A stretch of DNA of 64,000 bases from Neoechinorhynchus agilis (GCA_051530055.1 CM121341.1:11510784-11574783); one strand, 5' to 3'. Positions 24,860-50,507 are shown, counted from the stretch's first letter. Translations and numbers: made by a program. The notes: generated by a model not told the origin, from the sequence alone.

Positions 24860-27085
24860 ATGGACGTTAATGAACTTCTCAAATATAAGCCATCCGGGCA
24901 GCCCACTGATTCTGGGGTGGATACGACATCTAAACAAAAACCGAGCGAATTGAGAAATCCTTCGGATTTAAGTGCTCTACTTGATTCCGCAAATGAATGT
25001 ACTTATGACAATCTGGATGATACCGGCATCACATTTTCTCATTTTCATTCGTTTTACTTTCAGTGAGAATGAGAAATTCGTAGGCGAATGGTAAACGTCT
25101 TGGATAAGCGTATAAATACCAATCACCAAATGAGAATAAAGTGCTCCAATACACCTGATAGATTTTTCCAATCGGAAGCTGACCTAAATGAGTCACTTAA
25201 TGAACTTCATTGTCTATCAACACTCCCAAGACTATTTCCTACTTTTATTAAACTAAATGGTCTTCGACTCCTTCTTGGTCTTATTGACCATGAAAATTTA
25301 GATATTGGAATCGGCGTTGTTGATTTGTTTCAGGAATGGTCCGAAATGGAATCTGATGACGTAGAGGATTACGGATTTTTGATTAGTGAATTGATAGACT
25401 CAGAAATTAGTACGATACTTTTAAGGTTTTTGGAAAGGTTGAACGAGAATTCAAGAGAAGAATTCGATGCTGCTTATAACGTGTTGTGTAAGTTGGTACT
25501 TTTTTCCGTGGAGTGATGGGGAATATTGAATTTTTTACAAACGTTTTGGTCTATAGTTTAATGCATAACTTTTTCAAACCCTTTTTCTTTTCCATTTTAG
25601 CAATAATCGAGAACCTCGTGGATTATAAACCAAGCTTCTGTGAAACATTGATTAATGATAAAATCCTTAGCTGGCTTTTAAAGCGAATACGCCAAAAGCC
25701 AATGGGACATAACGTTCCGGTGGCATCAAACACTAATTTCGACGGAAATAAACTTTTTTCAAGTGAATTAGTGTCGATTTTGGTCCAACAAACAAAAACT
25801 GAAATCGGCGTGAACAAGTTCGTCGAAGAAGATGGAGTTGGAATATTCCTTAAGCAGCTTTCGGTCAGTTTAAGTTGTCATTTACGAACGCGTAACACCA
25901 CCTTTTGAGTATGTTTTAGCATTATAAGAAACGCAATCCTGAGAACAACGATGAATACGAATACATGGAGAACCTGTTCACTACACTTTGCTCAGTTTGC
26001 CTTGATGGAACCGCAAGGAAAACTTTTTTTAAAGAAGAAGGATTTCAATTGATGAATATTATGATGAAAGGAAAGAAACTGTCCAGATTTGGAGCTCTTA
26101 AACTCCTTTCATATTGTCTGAATTCCGATGTACCTGAAATTGGAGTGTATTGCAATGCCTTTGTAGAAATGCTCGGACTTTGTGTCATATTTCCACTGCT
26201 GATGAAAACGCCAAGTTTACGCCATAAACAACAGGGCATCGTCCCAGCAGATTCTTATTCCCAATCACAGTTACATGAGTACATAATGACCGTTGTGAAC
26301 AGCCTTATCAAGAACTGTACTCTAGTAGCCAAAGAACGAGTTCTTCTCAAATTTTCCGAGAATCGTTTTGAGAAAATTCAAAGGTTAGTTGAGTTAGTGA
26401 TGATGTGACATTTATGGGTTTTTCTAAGGAATAGAGGAGTAGCCTTTTGAAAACAAGATAAAAATCTGCCTTTTGAAAGGGACATTTATTCCTTAAAAGG
26501 TCAGAAAGTGCTCATGTTGACGCTTAGGGAAATCATTTCCGTGATTGTAGTTAGTTGACCATATTAATTTTTGAGGTTTTGATTTCGCAAAAGAACGAAC
26601 GGCTAAATCAATATTTGGTAATCACGACCCTTAGATCACATTTTCTAGGTTTGATAAATAAAACACAGCATTGTCTTCACTTAAAGGCGACATAAAAACG
26701 CTTCAATTTCGCACCTCGGAATGTCACTCCATCTACACATACAGACAATTATAAACGCTACCATTTGGTCCGTAAGATAATCGATGACGAAAAGGCAGAT
26801 CGAATGTATCAAGCAGAGGACAATGACGAGTATTTGTTAAAAGAACTGGATGCTGGTCTTTATATTCTCTTTTTGATTGATGAAACCTTGATGATTTGCA
26901 TTGAGAAATGCGACGATAGCGTTATTAATAACTTAAAGACGGTACTTAATGTAAAACGCGTGGATATTCAGGAGGTGATTGGAGTTGTAAGGCGTTATGT
27001 CCAGTATAAGAGTCCTGGATTTACTCATGCCATCAAGGACATAGAAAAACTCATTGCACGATGTGAAGAAATATTTAAAGACTAA
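24860..27085 (+). CDS. CTNNBL1: Beta-catenin-like protein 1 (PRP19/CDC5L complex), 5 exons
   Basis: MDVNELLKYKP start, RIKCSNTPDRFFQSEADLN, LGLIDHENLDIGIGVVDLFQE, FDGNKLFSSELVSILVQ, YMENLF, LDAGLYIL. Introns 2-3 are GT-AG; introns 1 and 4 are best modelled as non-canonical. Confidence 0.95.
25031..25081 (+). other. Predicted non-canonical hairpin intron (51 nt, AC...GT)
   Basis: Contains two in-frame TGA. Removal gives LDDTGIRRMVNVLDKR, colinear with human LDESSVKKMILTFEKR. The ends pair. Confidence 0.75.
26396..26736 (+). other. Predicted non-canonical end-paired intron (341 nt, AG...AC, or GT...CA if shifted 1 nt)
   Basis: Removal gives RLVELHTDNYKRYHLVRKIIDDEK, ungapped against human RLMELHFKYLGAMQVADKKIEGEK. 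Terminal GTGACATT/AATGTCAC stem. Confidence 0.65.
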
Positions 27086-27177
27086 TAAAGACTTATTCGA
27101 GCTACAGTTGCCATTAATACTTACGCATTTGAGTGCGCTGAATGTTTTTGATGGATCGTTAAATCTTAGCCATCTAG

Positions 27178-29580
27178 AAACACGTTTTATTTAAAAGAAG
27201 AAGCACAAGTCACCGATTCTTGTACCTTAGGTATCAGTGGATTTTGTACAAAGTTGACTTGGGTTGGTTAAGTTGTAGTTGTTGTTATCTCCTCGTTCCT
27301 CCGAATCGATTCGCATTTGGAGGATTGAACGGTTGAGAAGAAAGAGCGGAGATAGAGCGCTGTTGGAGGAAGCGAAGGATAAAAAATGTTGGTTCGACGT
27401 AAGTGTTTTAAGTGTGAGTAAAAGGAGAAATCTGTGGCAGAAATTGAAGAGTAGGAAGGGAATTAAAGCGCTTTTGGAAGATTCGAGAGAGGTGTATTTC
27501 TAAGGGCAGGAGTTCGGAGGAGCAGATTAGAGCGCATATCTTGTGAAATGCAATAAGTTTTTTGAATAGATTAGAACAACTTCAAAACGTTGGATATGCG
27601 TAGGTGAGCGTTGGTAGGATGGCGTACATATAGAAGTACTTAAGGTCTTTGGAAGTTAATCCAAGGAGTCCGAAGCGCTTAAGAAGATAGAGCTTAATGG
27701 ACCCTTTTTGCAACAAAATTGATTTACTTGTCTCACTTTAGATTTTCTTGAAAATGAAGATAAAGTATACGAACAGAGGAGACACGATTGATATTAAAAG
27801 GAAGAAGTGGCTGATCGGAAGAGCTATTTGCGATTGAGGGGACGATTTCGACGCACTTAATAGAGGAGCGAAATGCTTGAACGATAATGCTAATGACACG
27901 TTATTCCTGATGAAGCGGTCAACATTTTCTGAGGATGGCAAATCCGGTAGGGGGATGTCCCATCTGGTGGGGATTGGCGGATATTATTTACAGGAGAGCT
28001 TGTGAGGTTGATCCTTTTTCAGGTTCATTTCAGGTTACGATATCCGAGAAGATTTGGCAGTATGGAAAAGGAGCGGAGGTGGAGGGAGGTGCGATGTCGA
28101 AGGGGATGAAATGAATTGGGATTACGAGTGTTGTGCTCGTATGAAAAGGGAGAGATTTGTGGAAGAAATTGTGGTGGCGGGGTTTAGAGGCGTTTTGTTT
28201 GTTTGATGAGAATCCTGTAAAGGCATTCGGCGAAAGGGGAAAATCAACTGTGCAAATTTTAGATGCTCTTTTATGAAGAATTTCACGACGACGGGTTTGA
28301 GATTTGGATAGATTGCAAAGGACCGGATAACCGTAGGTGAGGGAGGGTAAAATAAAGCTGTTGTAAAATTTGTAGAGTTTGGGTGAAGGGATTCCTAAAT
28401 GCCGAAGGCGTTTGAGGAGATAAATTTTAAAGGTGTTAAGCTTGAGGGCGAGAGTGATGTGTGAGTCCTATTTCAAGTTTGATTGAAATTGGAGACTCAG
28501 AATTCTTAGGGAGATTACTCGTTGGATGTCATTTAAAAGCTCAGGGGATGATGTTGGATTTGCGGGAGAGAGGGGATCAAATCGAAGCATTTCGAGAAAT
28601 TCAGGTGGAGTTTGTGATTGGTGCAGAAATCTATGATTTGGATGATTTCGTTAGGGGGTGGGGTGATGAATGGGTGATGGGGGTGATATCGTCGGCGTAT
28701 AAGAAGATTTTAGAGTAGCAGGAGAGAGGTTTGAAGTCATTTAGGAAAATATTAAAGAGAAGTGGTGACAGCACAGCACCTTGAGGTACGCCTTTGGTGA
28801 GGGATAGACTGATAGAAGAGGTAGAACGGCAGTGAATGTATTGTTTGCGATTGTGAAGATAAGATTCGAGCCAGCGGTGTGCCACAAGTTGAGACCAAGA
28901 TCGGAGCAGACCCGGAGAAGGAGTACATTGTCCATGGAGTCGAATGCTCTCGATAAATCAATTTGATGAGACGTGTGACGTCGGATGGATTATTGCCGAG
29001 GTTGCGTAGGAGCGCGTCATATGCTAAGACCAAAATCGGAGCAGGCCCATAGGAGTGAATGATCTACGGAGTCGAATGCTTTCGATAAATCAATTTAACG
29101 AGACGCGTGACGTCGGAGAGATTATTGTCGCGGTTGCGTAGGAGCGTATCATAAACGCAATGTAGGGCATCGGTTGCAGAAAATTTGGGCCGGAAGCCGA
29201 ACTAGTTGAGAAGTGAAAGGCGAGATTTAAAACATTTTTTCGATGATGGAATGGTTCGGCGGAAATAGGGTGTGATTTTTTTGGAAGAAGGATGGGGTAG
29301 ATGCCATATAAAAAGCTGTGATTTATAATGTGGGTAAGAAGGCCCATGAGTTCGCGGAAGATGTAGCTAAGAGTCCAGTTTGGGATTTCAGATTGAGAGC
29401 ACGAATTTCGAGGTAATTTCTTGAGATTCTGTAGTATTTCGTATAACGACACTGAGCGGAGTATCGGCAGGTTGACCAAGGTTTCAGGTGTGGGCGTGAA
29501 AGATTGCGTGGAGTCTGAGACGGAGCAGCGACTGTAAATTGAGCCAGGACAGAGGTTCTCATAGATGGAGTCTAAAACCT
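27178..29580 (-). mobile_element. CR1/L2-group LINE (RT and 3' region), degenerate, with an internal duplication of about 130 bp
   Basis: RAFDSMD...HRWLESYLHNRKQYI...KGVPQGAVLSPLLFNIFLND...LYADD. Segments 28938-29025 and 29068-29155 are duplicates. Confidence 0.88.
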
Positions 29581-30047
29581 GTCTTAATTAAGAAGAGGAT
29601 AAATTAGGGAAGGGATAAGGGTTGCGAAGACCAAGAGAGTTCTATCAAAAACAAAAGTTTTTCCCATAGTTCGTACCAAAATCTTCAGAAAAACTTAATT
29701 TTCTGAAAATCGAAAATTTCAACCTGAATACTTCAATCATTGCAACAATGTTCGATTTGCCTCAGAATCATTAAATGAGCAGTACGCTTTAAAATGAGAA
29801 TCTCTGGGCCACTTTTTGAATTTACATTGTTTCTTCTGCTTAAAAAGACACGGAGCTGAGTGGTGTAAAATGCATCCGTTGATGTGCAACAAATCTCGGC
29901 GTTAGTCTAGAATAAAGTGCGTCTTTTCTCCATCTCACTGAATCTCTATGCTTCTTATGACGAATTGTTTTCCGACAGAGCTCGAGAAGTATAAGTGAAC
30001 CACACAAAGGTGAGTTCGCGGGTTGGTGTCTTGCTTTTTGAACGACG

Positions 30048-30995
30048 ATGGATCCAAACCATCTCGCAACCGACTTGATGCAATGCGAGTTTATCTTTAC
30101 AGCAAATGTCGATCAATCAATAGGTCAAATGGTTTCAAAATCACTGCCACCAATCCATCATAAAAAACTCAGTTTCCAAAATAAAAAGTTCATTAGAGGA
30201 GGTCCACATGAGAATGGACACGGTGATGTCGAGGAGTACGGATTTCAAGCTCGCCAAATGGAAGAGCCGGTATTTGCTACGGATGTTAAATACGTCGTTG
30301 GAGGGCATATCAATGAGGGTTATCCAGTTATCGACGTTATCCAGAAAGCCAACGATGGCGAAATAATGCAGCTCTTGATGGAATTACCATCAATCCCATG
30401 CGGTTGGACACGTACTCATAGCGGATGGGTTTCTCCATTTCCTAAGACTATGACTGAGCCTCGATGGTACAACGATCAAAAGTATTATGCAAAGGTGAAG
30501 TGCTGCCAAACTCGACGACCGGCGATGTACTGTGGCGAAGGTGTGGATTTAAAAGTAGAACAAGTTCGTAGTGGTGATCCGGCACTCCAATATTCAGCTC
30601 CTTATGGGGACGGTGAATTCATTGTCAGTGTAGCGAATATTAGCTCATCGCCTATTGAGGTTGAAGCCCTTCTCAGTGATCAGAACGGTCATATTTCTTG
30701 GGAAGATTCACTCGTATTGATTGATGAATTAAGTTCTAAAGCATGCGTGTTTCCTAGAGCTGCAACAAAGTCAGATCTCCGTCCAACTATTCTTCAACCG
30801 GGAGAGGTGAGGAGAACACGAATGAATGTTTTATCCTTAAAGGGCAGCGAGGAGTGGAAGAGTGGTGGAATTAGAGTTTATTTTAAACTATGCTTGGGAA
30901 ATATTTGCAGATCATCATTTTTCTACTATTTCTCGTCCAGACATGAACCAATGCATGAAGCGCAATTGGGCAAACCGGCGTTTACACCCGTCTAA
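30048..30995 (+). CDS. Intronless 315-aa hypothetical protein
   Basis: Long clean ORF with globular composition. No animal family recognised. Confidence 0.8.
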   Translation: MDPNHLATDLMQCEFIFTANVDQSIGQMVSKSLPPIHHKKLSFQNKKFIRGGPHENGHGDVEEYGFQARQMEEPVFATDVKYVVGGHINEGYPVIDVIQKANDGEIMQLLMELPSIPCGWTRTHSGWVSPFPKTMTEPRWYNDQKYYAKVKCCQTRRPAMYCGEGVDLKVEQVRSGDPALQYSAPYGDGEFIVSVANISSSPIEVEALLSDQNGHISWEDSLVLIDELSSKACVFPRAATKSDLRPTILQPGEVRRTRMNVLSLKGSEEWKSGGIRVYFKLCLGNICRSSFFYYFSSRHEPMHEAQLGKPAFTPV

Positions 30996-31192
30996 GATTT
31001 AATGGAATAAAAAATAAATCATCTCTTTTGACTTTGAGAGGTAATCAATGCTCAGAAAAACAACAATCCACTAATAGTCTGCTTCAGGCAGCTCGCGGTC
31101 AGTTTAAGTTTGCATTTACGAGCACCTAACACTACATTTGGACTTTCTTTTTGAAGTTTTTCCACCCGCGGGATTTAAATTCACTCAATTTA

Positions 31193-31703
31193 TTTCCGAT
31201 ATTTGACGTTGGATAATACCGACATTTCTCCAAGGTTTGTCATCTAAAACACAAACATTAGCGTTATCCTACTGACTGGTTATCATCGGGTAACATGTTC
31301 GCCAAACTGACCAGCTTATTAGCAGCTAAATTTATAAATTCTGGAATCGGGACATTTGCGAATAAGGACACTACATTAGCGGTATAAAAACTTAGTTCCT
31401 TGGCAGTGCTCATAGTCGTTTATGCTCAATCTGAGCAATCACAAAATTTCTAGGAGATTGAACCCAAGCATGATTGTTGTGTACGGCAAAGACGATCATC
31501 CAATTCGAGGATCTCTAGCTACAATCCAAGCTGAGCTGTTCATACGAATTGCCATTGAAAAGGCTGGATGCTCTAGCTTAGAGGTTCCAGTGGACAATGA
31601 GTCCAACAACGGGAGTTCGACGAACATGTTAACGCTAATGTTTGTGTTTTGGATGACAAACCTTGGAGAAATGTCGGTATTATCCAACGTCAAATATCGG
31701 AAA
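31193..31703. repeat. 74-bp near-perfect inverted repeat (31193-31266 / 31630-31703)
   Basis: TTTCCGATATTTGACGTTGGATAATACCGACATTTCTCCAAGGTTTGTCATC... appears on both strands. Confidence 0.85.
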
Positions 31704-32059
31704 AAAATCCCCGGCATTTAATAATGCCCAATTCTCTTCCTTCTGTGGACAATACGAACATCCATTCTCGATCGTAGCAGCAGCTTTCGAACGTTACTGG
31801 TGAAATTTTTACTGATATATTTTTATTTTGAGAATCGGCTTTCCGCCATATCAATTCGAGTGAACGATCATCCTGTTGGAGCCACACGATCTCCTTTTGA
31901 CGTTGATATCCATTATTCTCGAAAATTGCGTTTTTTCTGTCTATCGCAAATCGTTTATTCGTTAATGACGGTGAGCAAATCAATAATGAGAATCTCGATG
32001 CATAACTATCCTTTTACGGCGATGAATCCACCGGCGCTAGCGGCAAACCCAGTTTTTGG

Positions 32060-32700
32060 CTTTTATTCATTTCTTCATCTGAAGAAGGCAAGCCGCTCAT
32101 TGGTTTAAAAAACGATGCAATTCGTCGCAAATCAAGTTTTGCCTTGAAAAGCTTTGATGTTTTTGGATTTCAATCAACCCCGATGCTACCGAAAAAGTTA
32201 AGAAAGTTCTCGTTCAGAGTTGAAGACTTGTCATTGGATTTACAAGATCAAATCTGCGAACACTTCAACAAGACTGATGATGAAGTGTCTCTGCTGTAGT
32301 ATCTTCAAGTTAAGAAATCCACAGACATTAGTGGCAAAGCTCAACTGACAGCTTTATTCATTTCTTCACCTGAAGAAGGCAAGCAGCTCATTGGTTTAAA
32401 AAACGATGCAGTTCGTCGCAAATCAAGTTTTGCCTTGAAAAGCTTTGATGTTTTTGGATTTCAATCAACCCCGATGCTACCGAAAAAATTAAGAAAGTTC
32501 CCGTTCAGAGTTGAAGACTTGTCATTGGATTTACAAGATCAAATCTGCGAACACTTCAACGAGATTGATGATGAAGTGTCTCTGTTGTAGTATCTTCAAG
32601 CTAAGAAATCCACAGACATTAGTGGCTAAGCTCAACTGACAGCTTTTATTCATTTCTTCATCTGAAGAAGGCAAGCCGCTCATTTGTTTAAGAAAACGAT
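32060..32700 (+). mobile_element. hAT (Buster/Charlie/ZBED5-like) transposase fragment in a tandem repeat of about 292 bp x 2.2
   Basis: RVEDLSLDLQDQIC...LQVKKSTDISGKAQLTAFI resembles RIxDMSxDIxxQL...LQLDESTDVxGxAQLLxFVR. Anchor GAAGAAGGCAAG at 32081, 32372 and 32664. Confidence 0.7.
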
Positions 32701-33146
32701 GCAATTCGTAAGTTAGATTTTGGCTAGAAAAGCTGAGACGTCCGACCTTGGACGTTGTGACTGGGATACTTGCATATAAAGTACGAAATCGGACACTATG
32801 ACGCTTCTTCGTGGTGGGTTGATCCGGCATATTTATTAGTTTCTTCCAATGTTGCTTGAGTTTTCGCAATTTTTTTATTATTAATATGCCCTTTTTTGAC
32901 ATCAGACGACTAAATATTTCATTTTTCCGTAGCGCAAAAAGGATTTATTGTGAGTGCCATTGTTTTGTAAATGATCCGAATAGCATGCTTATTAAAGAAT
33001 GGTTCAGTGTCACTGCGAACTCGCTTGAGAGTATGAAATCATTCGCCCGTTCAAAGTACGACACCTTCTCATTCCCATTTTAACAATTTTTAACGCACCG
33101 TAAAAAATTAGTTTTAAAAAAGACATCGATGCTTAAGTTAATACTT

Positions 33147-35069
33147 TTAGAAATCGTAAATTGTTTCTATACTTGTATTATAGATTCCAATTGTATGCAA
33201 AGATTGAAGAGTTTTGAAAGGTTTACTGTAAAATTCACGTATCGGATTGCTGGAAATATTAAGAATCTGCAAACTCTTCAGTTCACACAAATGATGGGAT
33301 GGAAAGAACGGGAATCCATTATTTGCCATATGAAGAAAGATGAGTTGATCAAGACCGAAAAATAAGAAAAAATCGTCTATATCTTTCAATCGATTATTGG
33401 CAAGGTCGAGCATCTTTAACCGAGGAGTGTTTCTAAATGCCCTAGGAGTTATTTTCTGAATCCGATTAAACTGCAAACAAAGAAATTCAAGATTTCTCAA
33501 GTCTTGAAAATCGTCGTAATTGATTGCGGATATCTCATTATGACTCAAATCGACTGAGAACGCATTGCCATGGATAAACAATCGGACATCTTGTATTCGG
33601 GTCAAATTTTTCCATGTTAGTAGAGTAAAATTTGTTGAAACATTATAGACTGTAATCCCATCGTTTACATTAGCAGCCAATCGTGTCGGTTCAGGCATAT
33701 ATTTTGCAAGATCATGCAACGTAAAAAGTGTATCCCCAATGTTATTTTTATCGTATATTAGAACATAAAAGGGATTATGTTTTACAAGACAATAATCGAT
33801 CGTTTTAGAATGCAGTGAATCTGAAACCATGCCTCTCAGTGAATTTTGGGACACGTCCAGGAACCGCAAATGTTTCACGTTTTTAAAAAGATCTTCCTGG
33901 AGGACAGATAACTTTGTATTTGTTAATATAAGTTGATCAAGTAATTCGTTGTTTCGAAAAATTCCCGATGGAAGCAAGTACAACTCATTTTGCCCGAGGT
34001 TAAGTATTTCAAGTTTTTTCAGCGGATAAAATGCAACTTCGGATATCTGTGTGATTCTGTTCCATGACAGGTCCAATTGTCTAACATTCATCCACGAAAC
34101 AAAGCTGTTACACTTGATTATTTCTATGCGATTTCTTCTTAGAATTAACATCTCAGTCCGATTGTTTCCACGTGGAACTTCTTTGAGATTCGAACCAAAT
34201 ATCTTCACAAGTTTGACTTCTGGCATTCTGGCTAGAATTCCCGAATCCAAACGTCGAGGGATTCGGCCGTGTACAGCGAATTTCATCAATTTTTCGAATT
34301 GAAATTCATCTTTGAACAATTGGTTTAAATCTCGTTGGTATGAAAATTCTAGAATTTTAAGATTCTTAAGTTTAGCCAATCGACTTAAATTTATCTCATT
34401 TAAAAGGTTATCTGTGATCCGTATATTTTCCAGTCTATCAAAGTTGAATTCATCGGTTAGCACGAATCGCCCAATTAAATTATTGGACAAATCTAAAACC
34501 TTCAACATTTTCATCCTCTCGACAACATTGATGCAGTCATTACTTAAACTATTATGCGACAAGTGTAAGGATTGAAGATTGCGAAGATCGACGTGCATAT
34601 TTGATCCCAACTGCCACAAACCATTTTCGCTCAAATCGAGATCGGTCAGATTGTAAAAGCCTTTAAATGCATCATCCTCGATATATCCAAATCTTGCGTT
34701 TTTGATTTGAAGCCTTCTAGAATAAATGAATTTATGCATAAGAGATCTCGTGATGGTAATAATCTCATCTTGATTTCTTCTACAAAATATTGATACGTCT
34801 GCAGCGACGGGGATGATGTGATCGTTACTGTTTACAATATCATAGAAAAAAGCTAACTCTATTTTTATTCGATTGATTGATCTTTTTGTTTCTATACTGC
34901 TCAAAACACTTGATAGCGACTTGCTGGATTTAATTGTTGGGCACACAATGTACACTGCGTCGTATTTTTGGTATTGAAGTGAACAACGATTTAGCCCATC
35001 ATTTCCATAGCAAATGCTTAATCCGAGAATTAGAACGAGCGACGCTTTCACAAAAGACAGAATGGTCAT
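33147..35069 (-). CDS. Secreted leucine-rich-repeat protein (TLR-ectodomain-like), single exon
   Basis: Signal peptide MTILSFVKASLVLILGLSICYG followed by many LxxLxLxxN repeats. No TM segment or TIR within the ORF. Confidence 0.9.
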   Translation of the reverse strand: MTILSFVKASLVLILGLSICYGNDGLNRCSLQYQKYDAVYIVCPTIKSSKSLSSVLSSIETKRSINRIKIELAFFYDIVNSNDHIIPVAADVSIFCRRNQDEIITITRSLMHKFIYSRRLQIKNARFGYIEDDAFKGFYNLTDLDLSENGLWQLGSNMHVDLRNLQSLHLSHNSLSNDCINVVERMKMLKVLDLSNNLIGRFVLTDEFNFDRLENIRITDNLLNEINLSRLAKLKNLKILEFSYQRDLNQLFKDEFQFEKLMKFAVHGRIPRRLDSGILARMPEVKLVKIFGSNLKEVPRGNNRTEMLILRRNRIEIIKCNSFVSWMNVRQLDLSWNRITQISEVAFYPLKKLEILNLGQNELYLLPSGIFRNNELLDQLILTNTKLSVLQEDLFKNVKHLRFLDVSQNSLRGMVSDSLHSKTIDYCLVKHNPFYVLIYDKNNIGDTLFTLHDLAKYMPEPTRLAANVNDGITVYNVSTNFTLLTWKNLTRIQDVRLFIHGNAFSVDLSHNEISAINYDDFQDLRNLEFLCLQFNRIQKITPRAFRNTPRLKMLDLANNRLKDIDDFFLFFGLDQLIFLHMANNGFPFFPSHHLCELKSLQILNISSNPIREFYSKPFKTLQSLHTIGIYNTSIETIYDF

Positions 35070-36900: not shown

Positions 36901-37052
36901 AGCTGGCTAGCTTCGGAAGAACTGGTGATTGTCGAAGCCATTGATTGTTCATTAGGTTTTGCGAAAATTTCGTTATTCTCCTTGGTACCTTTTTTTATTT
37001 TGTAAAAACATGACATTGAGACGTTATTTAAGTTTTTTTAGACGAAGCTTCG

Positions 37053-40103
<3,051 letters not shown>

Positions 40104-40269
40104 TCAAGTGTAAAAAAAATCTTTACATTTTTATTGTTTTTCAAAAGAAAAAGATCGAATATTGTTATTAATGTTTCGGTTACCTAATTTTTAAGTCCTA
40201 CCATTAGGACGAACTGTGGTTTCCATAGCAACGCACCCCACGGTATTTACACAATTTGATTTTTCGAAA

Positions 40270-40761: not shown

Positions 40762-41329
40762 TACTTAATAAATTGTTTGAATAGTTTGCCTTTTTGGCTA
40801 ATTATAGAAATAATTTAGTAACTGCCGTTTAGTGTGCATTATTGATAATAGCGCATTTTATTGATGAAAAAAGATGAGGTTGTCATGTACCTCTGGGTAA
40901 ACGCAAACATTCGAGTTCTGTTAGGATAAATGAATGTGGCTGTTGATTTTGGAGTGGATTACGGGTCCGGTCGGGTACAAGTTTTTGTCAGTGTGTTTTC
41001 TATTCAATAAAACCTCTCAAAGGTCATCACAATTTATTGAATATAATAGTAACGTTACTAAATAATGGTGATACCACTGGGTCGATGTTCTATAATAGTG
41101 GTCATTCGTATAAAAGAGTTTGAGCACAAGAGCACCGCCGGGGTATTTCCAATAGCTATAAAATGACGCAATATTTAGGACAACCTTTTCGTACTCGTTC
41201 AAACCATCCGATCGTGGCTAATAGTTTCATGCAAGGAACATCATCAAACGATTATTAACTTTGATCAATCGGAATTGTGAATTAATCGCAAAAAGAAAGA
41301 AGGCAAGATATCGGTTGGCTGTGTGCCAA

Positions 41330-41580
41330 AGGAAAAAGTAGAGTAAGGCATGATCTAGACACCTAGTTTTTTAGGAGAGTTTGTGAGGTTGGTTTTTTCT
41401 CAGGTTCATTTCAAGTTATGATATCCGAGGAGATTGGGCAGCATGGAGAAATCAGTGGGGGAAACGGAGGATGAAATGAATTGGGATTACGCGTGCTGTG
41501 CTCGCGTGAAAAGGGATTATGGTAGAGTTAAGAGGCGTTTTGATTGTATAATGAAAACGTTAGAGGTGTTTGGTGAGCGG
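41330..41580 (-). mobile_element. LINE-derived fragment
   Basis: Similar to about 27990-28220 (GTGAGGTTG...CAGGTTCATTTCA...GATATCCGA). Confidence 0.75.
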
Positions 41581-42019
41581 GGAAATTTATAAACAACTTC
41601 TGATGTTTTACACCGTGGGAGAAGTCGCCACCTTTATTTTAAGTTATCAAAAGATTTAAAACACTAACCTATACTATCGCATAAAAAATCGACAAAACAC
41701 AAAAGCTATTATTTAGGTCGCTTGGCGACACCCGAGGGAGATAGCTAAAGACGAACGAAAAGTATTGTGATTAAGCGTCTTTTCATGATCTGCCCTAAGT
41801 GTAAATTTGGATTTGACTTAAACATAGCTGCTATAAAAGTATTATTGCAAACATTTTAAAGTTTCCCAACTTTTTAATGTGGTGAACGTTAAAAATTGAA
41901 AAATCCCCCTAGTTTTGATGGGTTTTCTTCTTTCATCCAAGAGAATTTGCTTCTTTAGTGCCTCTATTTCTTTTGATTTCCTCTTAAAGCAAATCATTGG
42001 AAAAACCACGAAAAGACAA

Positions 42020-42190
42020 GAGGAAAAGTACGCTTCTCCGTATATCGAGACGCTCGGATCGTTTTGCAATTTTCATGAGACTGAGACGAATCACTGACGA
42101 TCCGAGGGTAGGGAACGCTGCATCCTTCCTTTCGGTCATTACACAGGGAAGTGATCCAAAACGTGAGCTTGGATGATTTTCGAACTCTTT
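42020..42190 (+). mobile_element. CRE-clade 3' tip
   Basis: ETLGSFCNF...RITDDPR and GNAASFLSVIT, similar to 44240-44340 and 14900-14950. Confidence 0.65.
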
Positions 42191-42274
42191 TTGTTGAGGA
42201 AAAATAAAGAATCTCACTATTAACGAATGCAGTAAAAAAGGAACATTCATAAAAACCGATACTTTTCTTTTGCA

Positions 42275-43099
42275 TCAAACGTCTGCCATGATGGGTGGTT
42301 CATAATGCCCAGGATGTGCCGATTCGATTCGAACACCTCCTTCGTCTTCTTCATCTCCAACAACCTCAGCAGTCTGACCACCGGCTTCACCATGCATATA
42401 AAGAAGTCGCTTAAGATCGAATTTCGGTTTTTTAATCACCTTAACCTTCCTTATATAAATATCGCGAATCGGTCGTACTTTCCTACACGATGTCTCGATC
42501 TCCTGAGCGATTGTGTCCGGAATGAGTTTAACAACCAAGCCTCTAAGATTAGTTGAGCTAACTTCCCGATTCATAACATCAACCATTCGTCGACGGATAT
42601 TCTTGATCTGTGAATGATTGGCGTAACAGGTCAGCTTTCTTCGATTCTTTTCCTCAGTTGTGAACCCGATCGCAAATAGACGAACAACGTATCCGTCGGT
42701 TGTTCGAGCATCGGAATGTGCTTCAATCATCGTATACCGCTTCCGGATCTTTTGACACAACATGTCACGAGTAATCTCCATTCCATGGAAATTCATCAAA
42801 CAGTTACGTCCTTGTACTTCCTCCACCACAAATCGAAACTTACGGAAAGCCGATTCAGATGCACTCGGATCCAAGTCACCTAAACTTACTTCAACCACGC
42901 GGCCTTTTAAAGCTTCACTAGCGATCTTTGTGCCAGTTGTACGATTAACCAACGTTTTCCCAATAACCCGATTCTTAAACATCGAAGGCACCTTCAAATC
43001 ATACCAATCTTTTCTGGTGAACGGATCCACCACTTTACGCTTTCCACCTTTCCGAACGGTTCCTTTAGACGCTCCCTTTTTACTCTTTCCAACAGCCAT
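42275..43099 (-). CDS. RPS3A: 40S ribosomal protein eS1 (S3a), CDS intronless
   Basis: MAVGK...KVVDPFTRKDWYDLKVP...TGTKIASEALKGRVVEVSLGDL. The true start is 43099; the track ORF start at 43189 reads through a likely 5'UTR intron. Confidence 0.97.
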   Translation of the reverse strand: MAVGKSKKGASKGTVRKGGKRKVVDPFTRKDWYDLKVPSMFKNRVIGKTLVNRTTGTKIASEALKGRVVEVSLGDLDPSASESAFRKFRFVVEEVQGRNCLMNFHGMEITRDMLCQKIRKRYTMIEAHSDARTTDGYVVRLFAIGFTTEEKNRRKLTCYANHSQIKNIRRRMVDVMNREVSSTNLRGLVVKLIPDTIAQEIETSCRKVRPIRDIYIRKVKVIKKPKFDLKRLLYMHGEAGGQTAEVVGDEEDEGGVRIESAHPGHYEPPIMADV

Positions 43100-43239
43100 A
43101 CTGACGATTAAAAAAATGCCGAACGTTGTTGAGAATGCAGTGCACTGAGAATTGGACGCGGAAGAATTCTTTACCCGTGGAAACGTCATCTTTGCGCCAT
43201 AATAACACGTTTATTTCTTATTAGACAAAAAGGGACAAA

Positions 43240-43480
43240 TGTACCATTGAGTCCTCATGAGCACCCGAGTTCTGATTTGTGCTTTGAATGTAGTTGTTGA
43301 TTTTGAAGTGGATTAGGAGAGTTTGTGAGGTTGGGTCTTTACTCAGGTTCATTTCGGTTCATAATATCCGAGAAGATTGGGCAGTATGGAAAAATGTGGG
43401 GGGAAGTTGAGGAAGGATGAAACAAATTGGGGCTACGAGTGTTATGATTATGTGAAATGGGAAAGCGCACGGATTTATTC
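43240..43480 (-). mobile_element. Chimeric repeat: LINE-internal segment joined to a GAACTCGGGTGCTCATGAGGACT tail
   Basis: Body matches 27990-28130. Tail matches 12740-12775 and 55100-55135. Confidence 0.7.
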
Positions 43481-44229
43481 ACCTTAATTGTTGAGTTTCG
43501 CAAATAAACGCAAACTCCGATGTTTTCCTAAGCAAGAGTTTTCGTGTTGATTCACGGACAAGCTATGCCTTCGACATTGAATTGAGGTCAAGCAATTAGC
43601 AAAGCGTTGGACGCAATCATTTAACAAGGAATTTAACAATCGAGCACTCCCCTCGTTTTTTGGATTTAAGTTGCAACAAACTTTAGAAATGTCGAACGAA
43701 AAGCCTAACACTAGATTTCAGGTACTTTAAAGAAGATTGTCCCACAAAATTGTCTTAAAAATGAGCTAACTTTTTGCTAGCTTGTCTAAGCAAATCTACG
43801 AAAAAAACACGGGATTAACCTTTCTTAATACGATCTTACCAGCAAATATCTCTGCTTTCTGATTGTTTTTAGAACGCCTCGTTAACCACTACTCTGATGA
43901 TCTGTAGAGTTGTCCGTAAAATGAAATAGGATTGAACGTACGACCAGGAATTTAGTTTGGCACACTAAACCATGCGAATACTGTAAACTGCAAAATTATT
44001 GTCGTTCAATGGTGTTCTGAGCAAAAATATCCGTGCTCTAATCGTACAAGTCAAAGTTAAGTTGAGAAATCTCTGTTTCTCAGGCGGGTTTCCTCAATGT
44101 TTTTAAGTCTTGCCTTAATAAATAGGCGAGATGTTTGCTTTGAAATCGCACTCTAAGTGGAAGTACGCCTTTTAAGATATCGCAGTTGAATGATACCGTA
44201 ATTCTTTATTTTTGGACAAAAGAATTTTA

Positions 44230-44890
44230 TAAACAACTACGTCACCGCTCTGGATCATTCCATGATGTAATGGTCGAAATGATGGCACCAGGAATGCTCC
44301 TGCCCTCGGATCTTCGGCGATTCGTCTCAGTCTCTTGGACAATTGATTGACCAGGTCCTGCGCCGCAATACCAAACGACCAGACTGTCTCGACGCCAAAG
44401 GGAACGAAATAATGATTTCTACTCAGGTCCCTGTATTTGGTCTTTTTGCGGTCCTCGGCGGCGGTTGCTGCTTCCCCTCCTGTTTAACAGTGGCGAATTT
44501 TATGTTGCTGGCTGCGATTGGGTTCAGCCGGAATACTGTGACACCGTCCGGTCTACGGTGGCCATCGAGACAGCAAAGATTGCTCGGTTCTGGGATGTTG
44601 GGCGCATTCAGAGTATTCAAGGCACGACTAAGAGCATTGCGTTCATTTCGACGTTTCATGAATATCTTCGGCCTGATTGCTGACAGACGAAACCATTGCG
44701 TCCCGCTGGTTCCACAGTCGCTCCGAAACGTCAGTTCTCGAAGTCTCAGGGACACTTCAATCCTTACTGCCCCGTCGGAGAAAAGGGTACCCTCAAAATC
44801 GATTGGGATAGCGTTGAGCCAAGCACCCGATTCTCTTGTGGAGACTGCCGCCAATCAAGTTCAAGCGGCCAGGTGACAAGAATCTGAAAT
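44230..44890 (-). mobile_element. CRE-clade 3' fragment
   Basis: AAVSTRESGAWLNAIP...RRPDGVTVF, paralogous to the 8.3 and 15.0 kb copies. Confidence 0.85.
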
Positions 44891-44981
44891 TTATTATTAA
44901 ATTCAGTTATCGATATTTTTAGAGTTTAATAAAAAACAAGGATTAAATCTTTATCGATCAGTATACCGATCACGTTTTCAG

Positions 44982-45899
44982 ATGCGTCTACCACTACTCA
45001 GACCCTTGTTTTTATCCCTATGCAAGCGGCAAATTCGTGAAAGGACCCAACGTACACAACACGCTAAGCGTCCGAGTGTAGCCAAAGTAAAGGACAAATG
45101 GATTTCGTCGAAGGTCTCGCAAATTCACGCAGAAAAGGATATCGCGAGAACTGTATCGGCCGAGAAACCCGTCGATAATGTGTGGCTCCTAAACGATTTC
45201 CCTCAAACTCCATTGGATTTGAACGAAGCAGTTCGGTCAGTTCGCAAATCAGCCGAATACTTCCGCTTGACGAACTCTTTAATTTGTGCACGATTGGAAT
45301 TGAACATGACAACTGAACGAAAGACAAAGTTTCTGCCGAACATTCGTGGACTCGTCGATTTTCCGGTTGCATTTGAAGACCAACCCGCCAATAACGTTAT
45401 TCTATTTTGTAAACGAGATAATCATATTGAATTAGCTAGGAAATATGGTTGTTACCTTTACGGCCATGAAGATTTGATTAAAATGTTCGTAGCTGGTGAA
45501 ATAATGGATTTCAGTTATGACTACATTCTCTCTACTCCTGATGTTTATGCGGACATTACTAGGCTAAGGAAACGCGTTGGTGCTGATCGATTCCCAACTC
45601 AGGCAAACGGACAACTCGTAATTGATCTTGAAAAGGCTTTAAAAAAGTTCCGACATGGCCACTTCTATGAGTCTTGTAAATTATCTGATGCTTTGGCTAT
45701 CGTTAGAATCAATATCGGTCGAATTAATTTGAGCAACGAAGAAATTATGGAGAATTTTACGACCGCCATAAAGGAGATATTATCCCGGCATAATCCTCCA
45801 AATGGTTCTTTTATCAAATCAGCTCTTCTTGTTAGTCCCCCGACTACAGATAGGTTTTCGGTTGACATTGAACCTTTTGTCAAAGATGATGAAGAATGA
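44982..45899 (+). CDS. MRPL1: Mitochondrial ribosomal protein uL1m, intronless
   Basis: Transit-peptide-like start, PVDNVWL, ELNMTTERK...NIRGLVDFPVAF, RFPTQANG, IGRINLSNEEIMENF, ALLVSPP. Confidence 0.88.
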   Translation: MRLPLLRPLFLSLCKRQIRERTQRTQHAKRPSVAKVKDKWISSKVSQIHAEKDIARTVSAEKPVDNVWLLNDFPQTPLDLNEAVRSVRKSAEYFRLTNSLICARLELNMTTERKTKFLPNIRGLVDFPVAFEDQPANNVILFCKRDNHIELARKYGCYLYGHEDLIKMFVAGEIMDFSYDYILSTPDVYADITRLRKRVGADRFPTQANGQLVIDLEKALKKFRHGHFYESCKLSDALAIVRINIGRINLSNEEIMENFTTAIKEILSRHNPPNGSFIKSALLVSPPTTDRFSVDIEPFVKDDEE

Positions 45900-46304
45900 A
45901 CTCCTGTTTAAAAATGCCTCACTCATCGCCAAGCGTTAATTTATCCACTTTCTCGGCCTTAAATCTGAGCGCAGAACATAATCCCAATTCAAGATTCCTT
46001 TATTATCGACAGAGAAAATCCTTTAGGGTTAATCAAAGTATATACTTTTGGTGAAAATAATCCCCCACTCATAACATAATTGATTTATTTGGGGTTCGAG
46101 CTGATAATTGGTTACTGAACTTCGAGTTTGGCGATCCCGCACTCTCTTAGATGACTGAGGAGGCGAGATTTCCTCGCGTCATCGAGATTATTTTCACCAA
46201 AAGTATATTCCTTTATGTAATATATCATTGTTTTCGGGGTAAATTTGATTGTACGTTGGCGAATCCTGTCCTTGATGTTATCGATAGTCATTTATTTATT
46301 TATT

Positions 46305-46440
46305 TGAGAAATATTTCACAAGGTTTTCCGTGCCGCTTCAGTCTCTATTGCTTGTAAGCACGAGCTTACATATTTAAAAACTTACAAACATTTGCGACTG
46401 AAGAGGCAAGGAAAATCCTGCGAAATATTTCTCAAAAACA
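46305..46440. mobile_element. Head-to-head HHR-pair palindrome related to the 8.9-9.8 kb Penelope end
   Basis: Right arm CTGAAGA-GGCAAGG-aaaat-CCTGC-GAAA-TA-TT; left arm is its inverted copy. A further degenerate motif lies at about 46152-46185. Confidence 0.65.
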
Positions 46441-47763
46441 CAGGGGACAGGAATCGCCAACGTACAATATTATTTTATTATTATGAAATGTTTCGCAAAG
46501 TGTTAGTGGCGTCATCAACAATATCACGTGATTCTTCCGTATTTTGAGTATTTATCATACACTTTTCAATGTACCCGTTTAGAACGCTACATCGAAACGT
46601 CATAACAATGTGAAGATTGAGATTGTTCTCCGCTGTAAAGCTTTTCTTTTGCTCCTTCTTACATTTGTCGACATCCAGGCCAAGTTCTAATATCACGGTG
46701 AGGGATGTTCATTCTACATAAATGCTTAGGCTTTAAATGCAATTTATGACTTGTTGAACCCTGGGCGAACCTTGGTTTCGATTCTTAAAAGCTAGGACTC
46801 TGGTTTTTAATTTCTTTTGTTGTTTTTGAAAGTCAGTTCAGGTTTTTTTTGTGTGCATTTCCTCGCCTTGTTGCTATGAGCGCCTCATTTTTATCACTCT
46901 GATTTTTTATAGCCTAATATTTTCTTTAATGATACGGAAGAATTTACTGTTTGTGTCGATTTATGAATTGTCTATTTTTGGGCTTTTACGATTGTATCGT
47001 TTGAACGCCGAACTTGCCCTTTGTTTTTATACAAGCGTTTTCTAGGTCATATGACAGAAATGGGTTTTTCCGACAAAAAAGGTTGATAAAAAAAGCAACA
47101 AATCGCAAACGTTCAAATTGCACCCAAATTCTACGAAACAGCAATTTGTTTTAATCGATTACAAACACTTAAAGAAAAGTTCGAAGATCCCCTGCGAAAT
47201 TTGCGCTTTTACATTTGAGTTCATTCGAGTCGCACATTGTTCAAAAAAATTAACTTGCAATCGTCTCTCGCTCTCCACACCATAAGCTTGCGAAACAATT
47301 ATATTCATTGCTTTATAATGAAAATTCAGAGAAAATGTTGTATAAAGCTCTCGCGCGCGCAATTCGTCAAATGTTAGCGGAAAAACGAGGAAACATCAAT
47401 AAAGTTGATTTACATTGCTGCGAATTTTGTCCGAATTTGCGCTCGCGATGATTATTTTTTTCTTCAAAAGCACATTCGCTTCGCACGAGCTTCGTCGTCG
47501 AATGGCACGCACTATCAAATAAATTGTTTATTAATTTTGACGTCATCAATTTATTATCGTCTCCCTTTTATTAAATTGAAAAAAAAGAAATATTCGTTTT
47601 TTTCTTAATAATTGATTTTTTTCTCAAATCAATCAATTATTATGATTCACTATAAAAAAGTTAGAATGATGAAATCAGTGTTTATTTTGAGCGAACGCCA
47701 CACCCACAAGGCATTGCAGCAGCTTCTCTCATATCCATTTCACCTTCGAGATTCAGACTCGTA

Positions 47764-50507
47764 ATGTCATCCGGTCCGTCAGACAGTCATCAACCCGATA
47801 CCAGGAATATGATGTACGAATACACATCGCTTAGCGTAAGCGATGAATTACACCACCCGCCGCAAGCCACGGCCAGTGGTCAAGACGAAGAAGACGATGA
47901 TCGGTATAGGCCATCGACCGGTGCCACATACAGTTCGTCGTCGCCACCGCCGCCGCAACCACCGCAACCACCACCACAGCCACCGCTTACCGGTGACGAT
48001 GTGGTGGATTCATTGCACTCGCGATCTTGTGATGGTTCATGGCAAGATCAAGGGGCCGCATCTTCCACAATGCCAAGATACCGACCTTATCCTCAAGGCG
48101 GAGCCGCTCCTCATATTCCAAGTCGTATTCTGTTTATTCGAATCGAAAATGACCTTTATCCGGTTCCCGTTGACACCATTCGTCAAATCTGCTCGCCATT
48201 CGGTCTAGTTCTGCGAATTCGCCTCATACATAAAAATCCATCGAGTCCTCCAATCGCACTTGTCGAATTCGATTCGATTGCATCGAGCACCGACGCAATG
48301 AACAGTCTTCAAGGAGCCGACATCTACGCAGGATGTTGTACTCTCAGAATCGAATACTCACAAACTCCCCAAGTAAAAGTGAGAAATGGAGATCCAGATT
48401 GTTATGAGGCAAGAGAAGTGAGGGAACGACCACCTCAAAGACAAGGATTACTTCCAACTCCGACTACAATGCCACCAAGGAAACCCTCATCTCCCATTCA
48501 GGACGAACGTGGTGCATTTCCACCGCCGCCACAATTACCTCATCATCATCACCAGCAGCAGCATCTAACTGATCAGAATGAACAATTTGATCGTAGATAC
48601 GATCTGCATCCATCGCATATGTCGTACAGACATCCTTTCCCGCCTCCACCTCCACAAGGAGGACGGTATCATTCACAACACGAACGCGATACTTTGACAG
48701 ATCTCAATCGAAGAGTTTAGGTGTAAAATGTTGCGTTTTTCCACACAAATTTTCTATTGGTCCTTTTTCTTCTTTAATACTAGTTTATTGATTCGGGGAG
48801 GGAAAGATGCTTCCTTTTTCCCCAATATTTCACATCGGATAATTCCGAATAAATCAGTAAACCTAAATCCGGGGTTACAAAACTAAAAAAGAAAGTAGTT
48901 TATTGATGTTTAAGATGTTCACAGATTTATTTGTGTGTGTGCGCAATTACCACCGGCCTTTCAGTTACAAGATAAAAAGAGCCTAAATGCTTCACATAGG
49001 AATTCCTGTGAACTGTGGTTTTTTCGATGAATGATGTCGATATTTTTTTTAGAAAAACCTTAAACAATCAATTCAAGTTGAATCGCATAGACTCTCGCTC
49101 TTTTATAATCTAATGGAAACCAGAATTCGTACCATTTTCTTCTTTTTCTTCAATGCGTTCGTTAATTATTTTCTTTTTCGTAAAGCCTATAAGATTGAGA
49201 CCTGTAGAACTAGACCGTCTCCCACACCTCGGGGGATCCGATCATACGAAGAAGACCGCAATGGGGTTGGACGACGATATACAAGAAGTTCACGATACGA
49301 GGATCCCGCTTACGACAGCCCGCCGGTAGTAAGCCATCACGTGAACCGACGGGAGCCAATGGGTCCACACACGGTTCTATTGCTCAATAACCTGAACAAC
49401 GAGCACATGACATGCAAAAGACTGTTCAATTTGTTCTGTCTCTATGGGAATGTGTATGGTGTGAAGTTTCTCGCTTCGAGGGCGGGTTGCGCGATGGTTG
49501 AAATCGACAACATTGATCTAGTATCGAAATTCATGCGACCAATAAGCAACACCTTCATTTTTGGTCAGCGAATTAGTGTAGCCTACAGTAGACAAGAAGT
49601 CGTAGAGCCTGTTCATAAAACGTTCACCATGTCCGACGGATCACCCTCGTACTTTGATTTCTCAACTGATCGATCAAACAGGTACCAGAATGAACATAGC
49701 GCTTCGAAAAATAGACCAGTGCCGCCTACCAAAACGCTCTACTACTATAATATGCCACCGGATACAAACGAAAATGACGTGTTCAAAGTCTTTGACGACG
49801 CAGGAGCAAAACGACCTATTAGACTGAAACAGTTTCCTCCTCGAGTTCGCGATCATTCCTCACAGAAACCAATGCCACTTAGTGGACTTGCAGAATGGGA
49901 GAACATTGATGACGCCACTACTTCTCTTGTCCTAGCAAATAATACTCCCGTCTCAAGTCCGCAGAGCACGTGGCCGTACGTGTTCAAGTTAGCGTTTTCC
50001 ACTTCAACCATCATTGGTCCAGGGGTTTCGAGTGATGTAGAACCGCTTAGTAGTCGTATACAAGATGGTCCGCAGGAATCCAGGAAGCGGTCTTATCGAG
50101 AGGAAAGTGAAGAAGATCAATATGAACAGCCTAAACGACCAATGTACTCACGGAGACGTGAAAATGACCACCATAGGTCAGGAGGTCATTTGGCCGGTGG
50201 TGGCAGTAGTGGTGGTGGATCGTACAGGTTCATGAGGGGTGATACTTATAGAGGCATGGGTGGAGGTGGTATTAGAAGGGGTCATGGGCATAATGGAGGA
50301 CGAGATATAGAACGGTTTAGGTCTTCTGACGACCCAAGAGCCGTTGATCAGTATGGACTATTTCAAAGTGATTATACAGACCCTATGAATTCTGCCGATT
50401 ACTATGATCAAGGTAATGATGAGCTGGATGCTTATCCAATTGCAGGTGATGATCAAGTCGAAGATAAGGAAAGACGTCAGGATGATGATATGGAAGATGA
50501 TCATTAG
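47764..50507 (+). CDS. HNRNPL: hnRNP L/smooth-like RNA-binding protein, 2 exons, three RRMs
   Basis: RRM2 ...LQGADIYAGCCTLRIEYS, RRM3 ...RLFNLFCLYGNV, RRM4 PPTKTLYYYNMPP. One intron at about 48715-49195 with an ambiguous junction. Confidence 0.9.

Follow-up and report, generated by a model that had tools for sequence, protein, structure and literature searches.

The window considered here is a 64,000-nucleotide (nt) stretch of the genome of the acanthocephalan Neoechinorhynchus agilis (CM121341.1:11510784-11574783 of GCA_051530055.1), in which the coding sequences of two genes, CTNNBL1 and DDX41, are interrupted by inserts whose two ends pair with each other. On balance, we favour the reading that three of these inserts, and probably a fourth, are lineage-specific foldback insertions that are removed from the pre-mRNA as non-canonical introns. 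Four observations lead to it: the anatomy of the inserts, their missing canonical solutions, the excess of pairing between their ends, and their absence from relatives. A U2-type GT-AG or GC-AG register that gives a functional open reading frame (ORF) exists for inserts 4 and 5 and for about 35 other introns, but not for inserts 1-3. The canonical introns of the window number about 35 (one of them GC-AG) and are distributed across an SLC12 gene, a furin-like gene, CTNNBL1, DDX41 and an hnRNP-L-like gene; set against three inserts without a canonical solution, they bear out the original prediction that hairpin-bounded inserts form a small class within an otherwise GT-AG genome. The two genes and the five inserts are:

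24860-27085, + strand: CTNNBL1 (beta-catenin-like 1), PF08216-positive, with five exons and 554 amino acids (aa) in the spliced model
25488-25600 and 25864-25919, + strand: canonical introns of CTNNBL1, present in addition to two non-canonical inserts
25031-25081, + strand: insert 1 (CTNNBL1), 51 nt, containing two stop codons in frame; termini AC..GT, or CA..TA at +1
26396-26736, + strand: insert 2 (CTNNBL1), 341 nt in the register of the original prediction; termini AG..AC, or GT..CA at +1
37053-40103, + strand: DDX41/abstrakt helicase, 609 aa in the model, carrying inserts 3 and 4
37167-37221, 39159-39208, 39307-39358, 39456-39508, 39659-39728 and 39801-39855, + strand: canonical introns of DDX41
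37581-37630, + strand: insert 3 (DDX41), 50 nt, flanked by a 3-nt direct repeat GTA, with four registers (GT..AT, TA..TG, AA..GT, AC..TA)
38027-38862, + strand: insert 4 (DDX41), 836 nt; termini AC..AT in the register of the original prediction
48719-49188, + strand: insert 5 (tentative), within an hnRNP-L/PTB-like RRM gene at 47764-50507

All five junction strings that had been proposed were found at their positions, and the flanking ORFs are intact, as claimed: besides the inserts, there is no point stop, frameshift, or lost or damaged canonical splice site over the 554 codons of CTNNBL1 or the 609 codons of DDX41. The CTNNBL1 matches of highest identity are those of Brachionus plicatilis (40%) and Pomphorhynchus laevis (39%); for DDX41 the best match is again P. 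laevis (71%), with all other listed matches at 63% or less. The public gene calls break at the inserts. That for CTNNBL1 covers 25088-27085 only (493 aa), starting at the first ATG past insert 1 and lacking the first exon; that for DDX41 covers 38933-40103 only (296 aa), the portion downstream of insert 4, such that the conserved 5' half, including part of the DEAD domain, is uncalled. Gene finders confined to GT-AG are expected to stop and start exactly at such sites; the breaks fit the favoured reading but are not RNA evidence. The 296-aa call is identical to the 3' half of our DDX41 model, which validates the 3' coordinates.

Splice models were scored by comparing all in-frame exon joins around each site with 26-30 orthologs, a procedure that recovers the length of an intron exactly and its position only within a few nt (in a canonical control, the true GT-AG model scored 87.3 vs 89.1 for the best). 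At insert 1, removal of 51 nt (25031-25081 +/-1) scored 59.9, compared with 51.0 for a GC-AG model (48 nt) and 45.9 for the best GT-AG model (33 nt). The 51-nt removal yields LDDTGIRRMVNVLDKR, which is gap-free against 46 orthologs, none of which carries an indel in this motif in a MAFFT alignment; the 33-nt GT-AG model would insert 6 residues there and is 10 nt below the shortest secure canonical intron of the window (43 nt; the short canonical introns are 43-57 nt). The predicted junction strings are GATGATACCGGCATC/AGGCGAATGGTAAAC for the non-canonical and TTCTCATTTTCATTC/GCGAATGGTAAACGT for the GT-AG alternative.

At insert 2, single removals of 341-353 nt scored 82-85 against 30 orthologs, and no in-frame GT-AG model was among the better candidates: a 380-nt single GT-AG intron scored 67 and ten two-intron paths scored 35-65. 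These canonical paths lose or replace 10-16 conserved residues, including an invariant ELHxKY segment. The junction is predicted as AAGGTTAGTTGAGTT/ACATACAGACAATTA, with AGGTTAGTTGAGTTA/AATTATAAACGCTAC and .../TATAAACGCTACCAT as alternatives and AGGTTAGTTGAGTTA/ATAATCGATGACGAA as the GT-AG counterpart. Five guessed junctions for the public 493-aa CTNNBL1 product were looked up by exact match, and none was present in the collection; many two-intron GT-AG paths give 493 aa, and product length therefore has no power to fix the junction.

Insert 3 gives the clearest case. Its flanking exons are in frames 1 and 0, and the length removed at this spot must be 2 mod 3 to give a 12-residue peptide; removal of 50 nt does so, and the peptide is gap-free against P. 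laevis NIQIEGIDPPP. The sole GT-AG pair at this site (37579-37632, 54 nt) breaks the frame and hits a stop codon, though the exon upstream is conserved (57% identity to P. laevis). The corresponding junction strings are ATTTAACATCCAAGT/AGATGGAGATGATAT (non-canonical) and GTATTTAACATCCAA/ATGGAGATGATATTC (frame-breaking GT-AG).

The original prediction had held that only two cases exclude a plausible canonical model; in our hands three resist one (insert 3 outright, insert 2, and insert 1 least securely). Inserts 4 and 5 do not, and both must be withdrawn as evidence of non-canonical splicing, each having plain in-frame GT-AG solutions. For insert 4, moving both borders 3 nt rightward gives an in-frame GT-AG intron (38030-38865) and the same peptide, PLREQ; the non-canonical GGGAGGAATGCCATT/AAGAGAGCAGTCTGA and the GT-AG AGGAATGCCATTACG/AGAGCAGTCTGAGGC differ by one base, A vs C. 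For insert 5, 48715-49193 and 48666-49207 are both in frame, and the latter reproduces the 733-aa public call; the linker region in which insert 5 lies is unconserved, so the junction is not placeable by homology.

It is quite improbable that all of these sites are spliced canonically to give aberrant proteins, insert 1 as the 33-nt GT-AG or 48-nt GC-AG intron, insert 2 as the 380-nt GT-AG intron or as two GT-AG introns round a mini-exon, and DDX41 being translated from an internal start downstream of insert 3. In-frame GT-AG paths do exist for inserts 1 and 2, the public 493-aa CTNNBL1 call must use such a path, and inserts 4 and 5 are compatible with canonical splicing. Such splicing would nevertheless leave insert 3 without an in-frame path downstream of a conserved exon, cost CTNNBL1 its ELHxKY segment and invoke an intron shorter than any secure one, and it does not explain why the strongest hairpins are in exactly these introns.

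The strength of end pairing was measured as the energy of the duplex between the first 20 nt and the last 20 nt of each of 35 introns from five genes of the window. Inserts 4 (-18.7 kcal/mol), 2 (-17.3), 1 (-17.0) and 3 (-11.9) were the four strongest, the other 31 ranging from 0 to -9.7 kcal/mol. Relative to dinucleotide shuffles, z was -5.7, -5.3 and -2.3 for inserts 1, 2 and 3, respectively, and about 0 for 13 canonical controls; insert 1 as a whole folds with a minimum free energy of -15.1 (z -4.0). The inserts had originally been picked for their paired ends, and the energy ranking alone is thus circular. Independent of that choice, the four best-paired of the 35 include every one of the three introns that lack a canonical solution (hypergeometric p ~6e-4). 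The claim of reverse-complementary ends stands beyond chance for inserts 1-4; insert 5, with a stem of only 4-5 bp (base pairs) and an end duplex of -4.0 kcal/mol, is no outlier.

The terminal stems comprise 15 bp in insert 1 (25035-25049 with 25062-25076, two U.G pairs), 4+9 bp in insert 2 (26399-26413 with 26719-26733), 10 bp in insert 3 (37584-37593 with 37618-37627, one G.U pair) and 12 bp in insert 4 (38030-38041 with 38848-38859, three G.U pairs). Most departures from perfect complementarity are G.U pairs, and the sense strand therefore forms the more stable duplex in insert 1 (-17.0/-11.7, sense/antisense), insert 3 (-11.9/-8.5) and insert 4 (-18.7/-4.9), the two strands being equal in insert 2; this bias is modest evidence that fits selection on RNA structure. 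In the register of the original prediction, the spacing between border and stem is 3/3 nt in inserts 2, 3 and 4, and 4 and 5 nt in insert 1. Pairing between the exons across the junctions, striking in duplex drawings, was not enriched over canonical introns or background and was rejected as chance, except possibly in insert 5. A scan of the whole window for hairpins flanked by open frames returned 443 candidates, nearly all noise.

A common junction Y/A...Y/A can be drawn for all five inserts, as had been proposed, but in part this is a choice of register (insert 1 slides over 2-3 positions, insert 2 over 2 and insert 3 over 4). The duplication of YA, mostly TA, that was said to accompany it was not found consistently: TA lies on both sides of inserts 3, 4 and 5, whereas insert 1 has CA/TA and insert 2 TA/CA, the border repeats of inserts 1-3 measure 1, 1 and 3 nt, and two of the three introns with TA on both sides (4 and 5) also have GT-AG solutions. 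TA at both borders of three of the five, the precision that removal would have, and the preparation of DNA from whole worms would suit excision at the DNA level in somatic or expressing nuclei, like that of the TA-bounded internal eliminated sequences (IESs) of ciliates, with the assembly representing the unexcised form. This is very improbable: in inserts 1 and 2 just one border has TA, the bias of G.U pairing towards the sense strand speaks for RNA, and the window showed no domesticated transposase. Acanthocephalans are not known to undergo programmed DNA elimination.

The coding sequence of P. laevis is uninterrupted at the positions of inserts 1, 2, 3 and 4, as is that of Brachionus calyciflorus at inserts 1 and 2 and of Adineta steineri at insert 3; by comparison, the canonical DDX41 intron 37167-37221 (after ...KRGTEY) is common to P. 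laevis. This restricts the odd introns to one lineage, as insertion would predict, and the expectation that their positions would be intron-free in another acanthocephalan and in rotifers is borne out. They share with introner-type introns inverted repeats at the ends, slidable borders and a lineage-specific position. Two canonical DDX41 introns, 39159-39208 and 39307-39358, are also absent from P. laevis and have end pairing (-6.3 and -5.7) among the stronger canonical values; they could be older insertion-derived introns since converted to GT-AG.

Several points weigh against removal of the inserts from pre-mRNA, or against its details. A restored frame alone is no proof of removal, as any recent insertion in an intact gene looks precisely removable, and decaying genes, or insertion alleles segregating among the approximately 50 pooled worms, are conceivable given the loss of BUSCOs. 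About 90% of introns here are GT-AG, and there is no sign that the spliceosome of this species takes A...Y termini. No same-species protein or cDNA for CTNNBL1 or DDX41 was present in the protein collections searched, and the supplement of the N. agilis genome paper makes no mention of either gene (PMC12690905). Insert 1 retains its 33-nt GT-AG alternative, and the exact junctions are uncertain, above all the 3' border of insert 2, which homology would place anywhere in 26736-26749. A second copy of inserts 1-3 was found neither in the 64-kb window (by BLAST) nor in 8 kb more (by eye only), and the ORFs scanned contained no DDE transposase domain, only Penelope-like GIY-YIG and reverse-transcriptase fragments; both searches are weak, the sample being ~0.15% of a ~46-Mb genome. 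With no second copy of inserts 1-3 and no DDE transposase found, and with border repeats of 1-3 nt, the assignment to a Tc1/mariner or Stowaway-type family of miniature inverted-repeat transposable elements (MITEs) lacks support; the TA-targeting transposase with matching terminal inverted repeats (TIRs) that was to be sought did not appear in the ORFs scanned. Inverted repeats of the kind that such MITEs have at their ends are present (stems of 10-15 bp) but begin 3-4 nt inside the proposed borders.

The N. agilis assembly (46.2 Mb, three scaffolds, 39% GC) is a MaSuRCA hybrid of Oxford Nanopore Technologies (ONT) and Illumina reads, the DNA having been obtained from a pool of ~50 whole worms, and is accompanied by 74 RNA-sequencing libraries, deposited as PRJNA1223661 (PMC12690905). 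About 45% of metazoan BUSCOs are missing in the genome; complete eukaryote BUSCOs amount to 58.4% in the genome (MetaEuk) vs 71.0% in the transcriptome, and k-mer completeness is 96% (PMC12690905). The missing BUSCOs and the pooling of worms, together with the frequency of foldback elements in the window and the intactness that flanking ORFs would have after any fresh insertion, are consistent with inserts that are never removed, being recent disruptive foldbacks, young pseudogenes or insertion alleles from the pool. We nonetheless regard this as unlikely, since three or four independent events would have had to occur in two genes that have no other lesion in 554 + 609 codons, the stems have already changed and the changes keep RNA pairing as G.U, and DDX41 is broadly conserved across animals. 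Least credible of all is an origin of the inserts in errors of the hybrid ONT/Illumina assembly. Pooled reads were indeed combined by MaSuRCA, but each insert is a unique, internally structured sequence (50-836 nt) and no homopolymer or duplication error, and four artefacts, all at frame-compatible positions of two genes, would be implausible.

In the favoured reading, that of removal as non-canonical introns, inverted-repeat-bounded foldback sequences would have entered coding exons on the line leading to this acanthocephalan, where they came to act as introns. The terminal helix in the pre-mRNA would draw both borders together, and precise removal of the segment would restore the reading frame that preceded insertion; in the register fitting all cases, the intron would start with A and end with T or C. 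What we infer is that removal takes place in RNA, where exactly the exons are joined and which machinery acts; by analogy with the larvacean Fritillaria, discussed below, this machinery would most likely be the ordinary U2-type spliceosome acting on non-canonical A...Y termini.

Removal at the RNA level without the spliceosome, by a structure-guided endonuclease and a ligase cutting at a fixed distance from the terminal helix, as suspected in euglenids, is distinctly unlikely, and this part of the original prediction finds no support. The non-canonical termini have no conserved dinucleotide, the G.U-rich stems are sense-strand-specific, and the regular 3/3-nt spacing between helix and border in inserts 2, 3 and 4 recalls the Euglena code N3-CAG...CTG-N5-6; with three or four cases, however, the spacing rule may be chance, the junctions show no bulge-helix-bulge, no IRE1-type CNG/NNG loops and no Rfam match, and Fritillaria, the sole animal precedent, uses the U2 spliceosome. 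Similarly, it is a long shot that an animal possesses a second, structure-read intron-removal system, with cut sites set solely by their distance (~3 nt) from the terminal helix. The agent of such a system would be a euglenid-like non-spliceosomal endonuclease/ligase, or the spliceosome taking helix-presented A...Y termini.

Other known routes were considered and rejected. U12-type AT-AC splicing would call for the consensus /ATATCCTT at the 5' end and a branch site TCCTTAAC 10-26 nt from the 3' end, both of which are lacking: the 5' ends of the inserts read ACATTTTC, AGTGATGA and AACTCATG, and an AT-AC register of insert 2 (26400-26746) is without the U12 consensus, the sole TTCCTTAA being ~250 nt from the 3' end. 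The tRNA-type bulge-helix-bulge recognised by TSEN (two 3-nt bulges, 4-bp helix) does not apply to junctions that instead face one another across the foot of a single long helix, and IRE1-type cleavage (twin 7-nt loops, CNG/NNGN) is not compatible with the nucleotide ahead of each cut, which is T or C, never G. No family of Rfam matched anywhere in the window. Translational bypassing of the T4 gene 60 type might be imagined for insert 3 (50-nt gap, matching GTA codons); insert 1 is without matching in-frame take-off and landing codons, and insert 2 is 341 nt long. If A-to-I editing were to produce GT or AG, an AT-AG register would become usable in insert 1 alone, and insert 3 would be left unexplained.

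Non-canonical introns of Fritillaria borealis were reportedly described by Henriet et al. in 2019. In this animal, non-canonical introns derived from TIR-bearing elements, with AG/AC and AG/AT as the commonest termini, depend on the U2 spliceosome; they make up ~95% of its introns and fall into recognisable element families, and U2AF is duplicated (bioRxiv 10.1101/2025.08.15.670264). The N. agilis inserts resemble them in the animal host, in being inverted-repeat insertions with non-GT/AG ends, A first and C or T last, and in that removal restores the ORF. The likeness to Fritillaria that had been suggested is thus sustained, in that all five inserts start with A and end with T or C, as in the AG/AC and AG/AT classes, and the termini of insert 2 are literally AG..AC. 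The differences are that only ~3 of 38 introns are non-canonical here, that no family is visible, and that the second and penultimate nucleotides are unconserved.

The introners of Amoebophrya, a parasite of dinoflagellates or dinoflagellate parasite, have inverted repeats of 8-20 nt at the intron ends and direct repeats of 3-5 nt at the borders; more than 60% of introns in this organism are non-canonical, as confirmed by RNA-seq, and a minority are assignable to MITE families (PMC7789003). As in that organism, a hairpin joins the exon borders in N. agilis, direct repeats overlap slidable borders, there are no fixed dinucleotides, and the host is parasitic; Amoebophrya, however, is a protist, and in the animal studied here the border repeats are 1-3 nt and the candidate cases number a handful. 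The nonconventional introns of Euglena follow a spacer-helix code, N3-CAG...CTG-N5-6/R, in which a purine opens the exon; they are suspected to have arisen from MITE-like elements, and their mechanism is thought to be non-spliceosomal (PMC6221363, PMC3935182, PMC12501133). Variable non-canonical borders, a stable structure joining the junctions and short spacers between border and helix are common to these and to the N. agilis inserts. Unlike the euglenid signature (5'-N3-CDG...CH'G-N5-6/R), the latter have no CAG/CTG at the base of the helix and have spacers of 3/3 (inserts 2-4) or 4/5 (insert 1).

Introners of Micromonas and Aureococcus, as reportedly described by Huff et al. in 2016, bring along or generate GT-AG sites and number hundreds to thousands of almost identical copies. 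They are introns made by insertion of DNA transposons, with TIRs and target-site duplications at their borders (PMC7789003). The inserts described here share with them lineage-specific positions, but not the GT-AG termini or the many copies. The IESs of Paramecium, which are of Tc1/mariner descent and have degenerate TIRs, measure at least 26 nt and are removed precisely from DNA by a domesticated transposase, with TA obligatory at both ends. The inserts are like these in being short, in interrupting coding sequence, in ending in inverted repeats and in the precise removal proposed for them, and unlike them in having TA at both ends in only three of five cases and a stem asymmetry that points to RNA. 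Mirtrons are hairpin introns of 50-60 nt with paired ends; they resemble the inserts in this pairing and differ in being spliced at normal GT-AG sites.

Hairpin-ended, slidable, insertion-derived non-canonical introns are thus known from Fritillaria, Amoebophrya and euglenids, and those of this acanthocephalan are candidates for the same class. A literature search found no report of non-canonical introns or introners in acanthocephalans or rotifers. If the favoured reading is correct, N. agilis would stand as only the second lineage among animals, and as the first among protostomes (Syndermata), in which hairpin-ended non-GT-AG introns of insertion origin are removed from mRNA. Its genome, unlike that of Fritillaria, is still ~90% GT-AG and could show an early stage of normal splicing coping with foldback insertions, which bears on the birth of new introns and on the strictness of the GT-AG rule. 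Were a structure-read system to operate, exons could tolerate foldback insertions, which would turn into new introns. Gene finders that allow only GT-AG shorten or distort such genes, as in the public CTNNBL1 and DDX41 calls cut at these sites, and introns that cannot be modelled may contribute to the gap between genome and transcriptome BUSCOs (58.4% vs 71.0%, eukaryote set).

Both genes with odd introns encode spliceosome-associated proteins, CTNNBL1 (Prp19 complex) and DDX41/abstrakt, which may be a coincidence. The GenBank P. laevis DDX41 model treats as intronic a conserved coding stretch of 51 nt (GKTMVFVLPAIMQCLQQ; 15487-15639 of the P. laevis sequence examined), and its N-terminal ~120 aa, without a counterpart in the DDX41 of the window, may be a fused upstream gene; the details of this gene model are not to be relied on.

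The window is rich in foldback elements of 90-480 nt, which lie both intergenically and in canonical introns and are mutually unrelated. No TA duplication was found around the other foldback elements of the window. Those recorded, of 90-370 nt, are:

46303-46436, 62273-62423, 22499-22600, 24554-24698, 3524-3622, 20736-20824, 13130-13242, 38213-38585 and 38709-38813: foldback elements

Two of these (38213-38585 and 38709-38813) are repeated elements nested in insert 4, parts of which recur elsewhere in the window. Kinship of insert 1 with a foldback inside insert 4 was rejected: the shared 11-nt word is at chance level and BLAST finds nothing. A nested double-hairpin foldback precedes the start codon of CTNNBL1 by ~160 nt.

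Among the other genes, that for the SLC12 transporter has 18 GT-AG introns within the window, as determined by eye and by comparison with the public 853-aa product P0189. A single-exon LRR gene is also present, and its product matches exactly on CM121341.1 (19.4 Mb), which runs in the same orientation as the window. The furin-like gene is represented by:

59173-61040: furin/kexin-like proprotein convertase gene, with seven GT-AG introns and one GC-AG intron
59948-59994, + strand: GC-AG intron of the furin/kexin-like gene, with a strong donor AAG/GCGAGT

An apparent 36-nt intron in this gene is probably 48 nt, the public call being 4 aa shorter than our model, and lends no support to very short introns.

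Retroelement remnants occur at 9062-9583 (- strand) and 28631-28885 (- strand), comprising an ORF for a GIY-YIG endonuclease that passes the Pfam cut-off at 26.5 bits and is suggestive of a Penelope-like element, together with an RVT_1 fragment. GC skew is strongly positive at 26000-30000 (maximum +0.375 at 28-30 kb), downstream of CTNNBL1, where minus-strand reverse-transcriptase fragments are located; no tandem repeat was found in this region. A repeated ORF family ('AAVSTRESGAWLNAIPI...') has at least three copies, at 8326-8910 (+), 15011-15688 (-) and 44423-44854 (-), with a fourth just past the window (18284-18889 of the adjoining sequence). Finally, two near-identical 51-aa ORFs at 32144-32299 and 32435-32590 (+), 291 nt apart, constitute a local tandem duplication within a multi-exon gene that is lineage-specific (476 aa, publicly called at 30048-32590).

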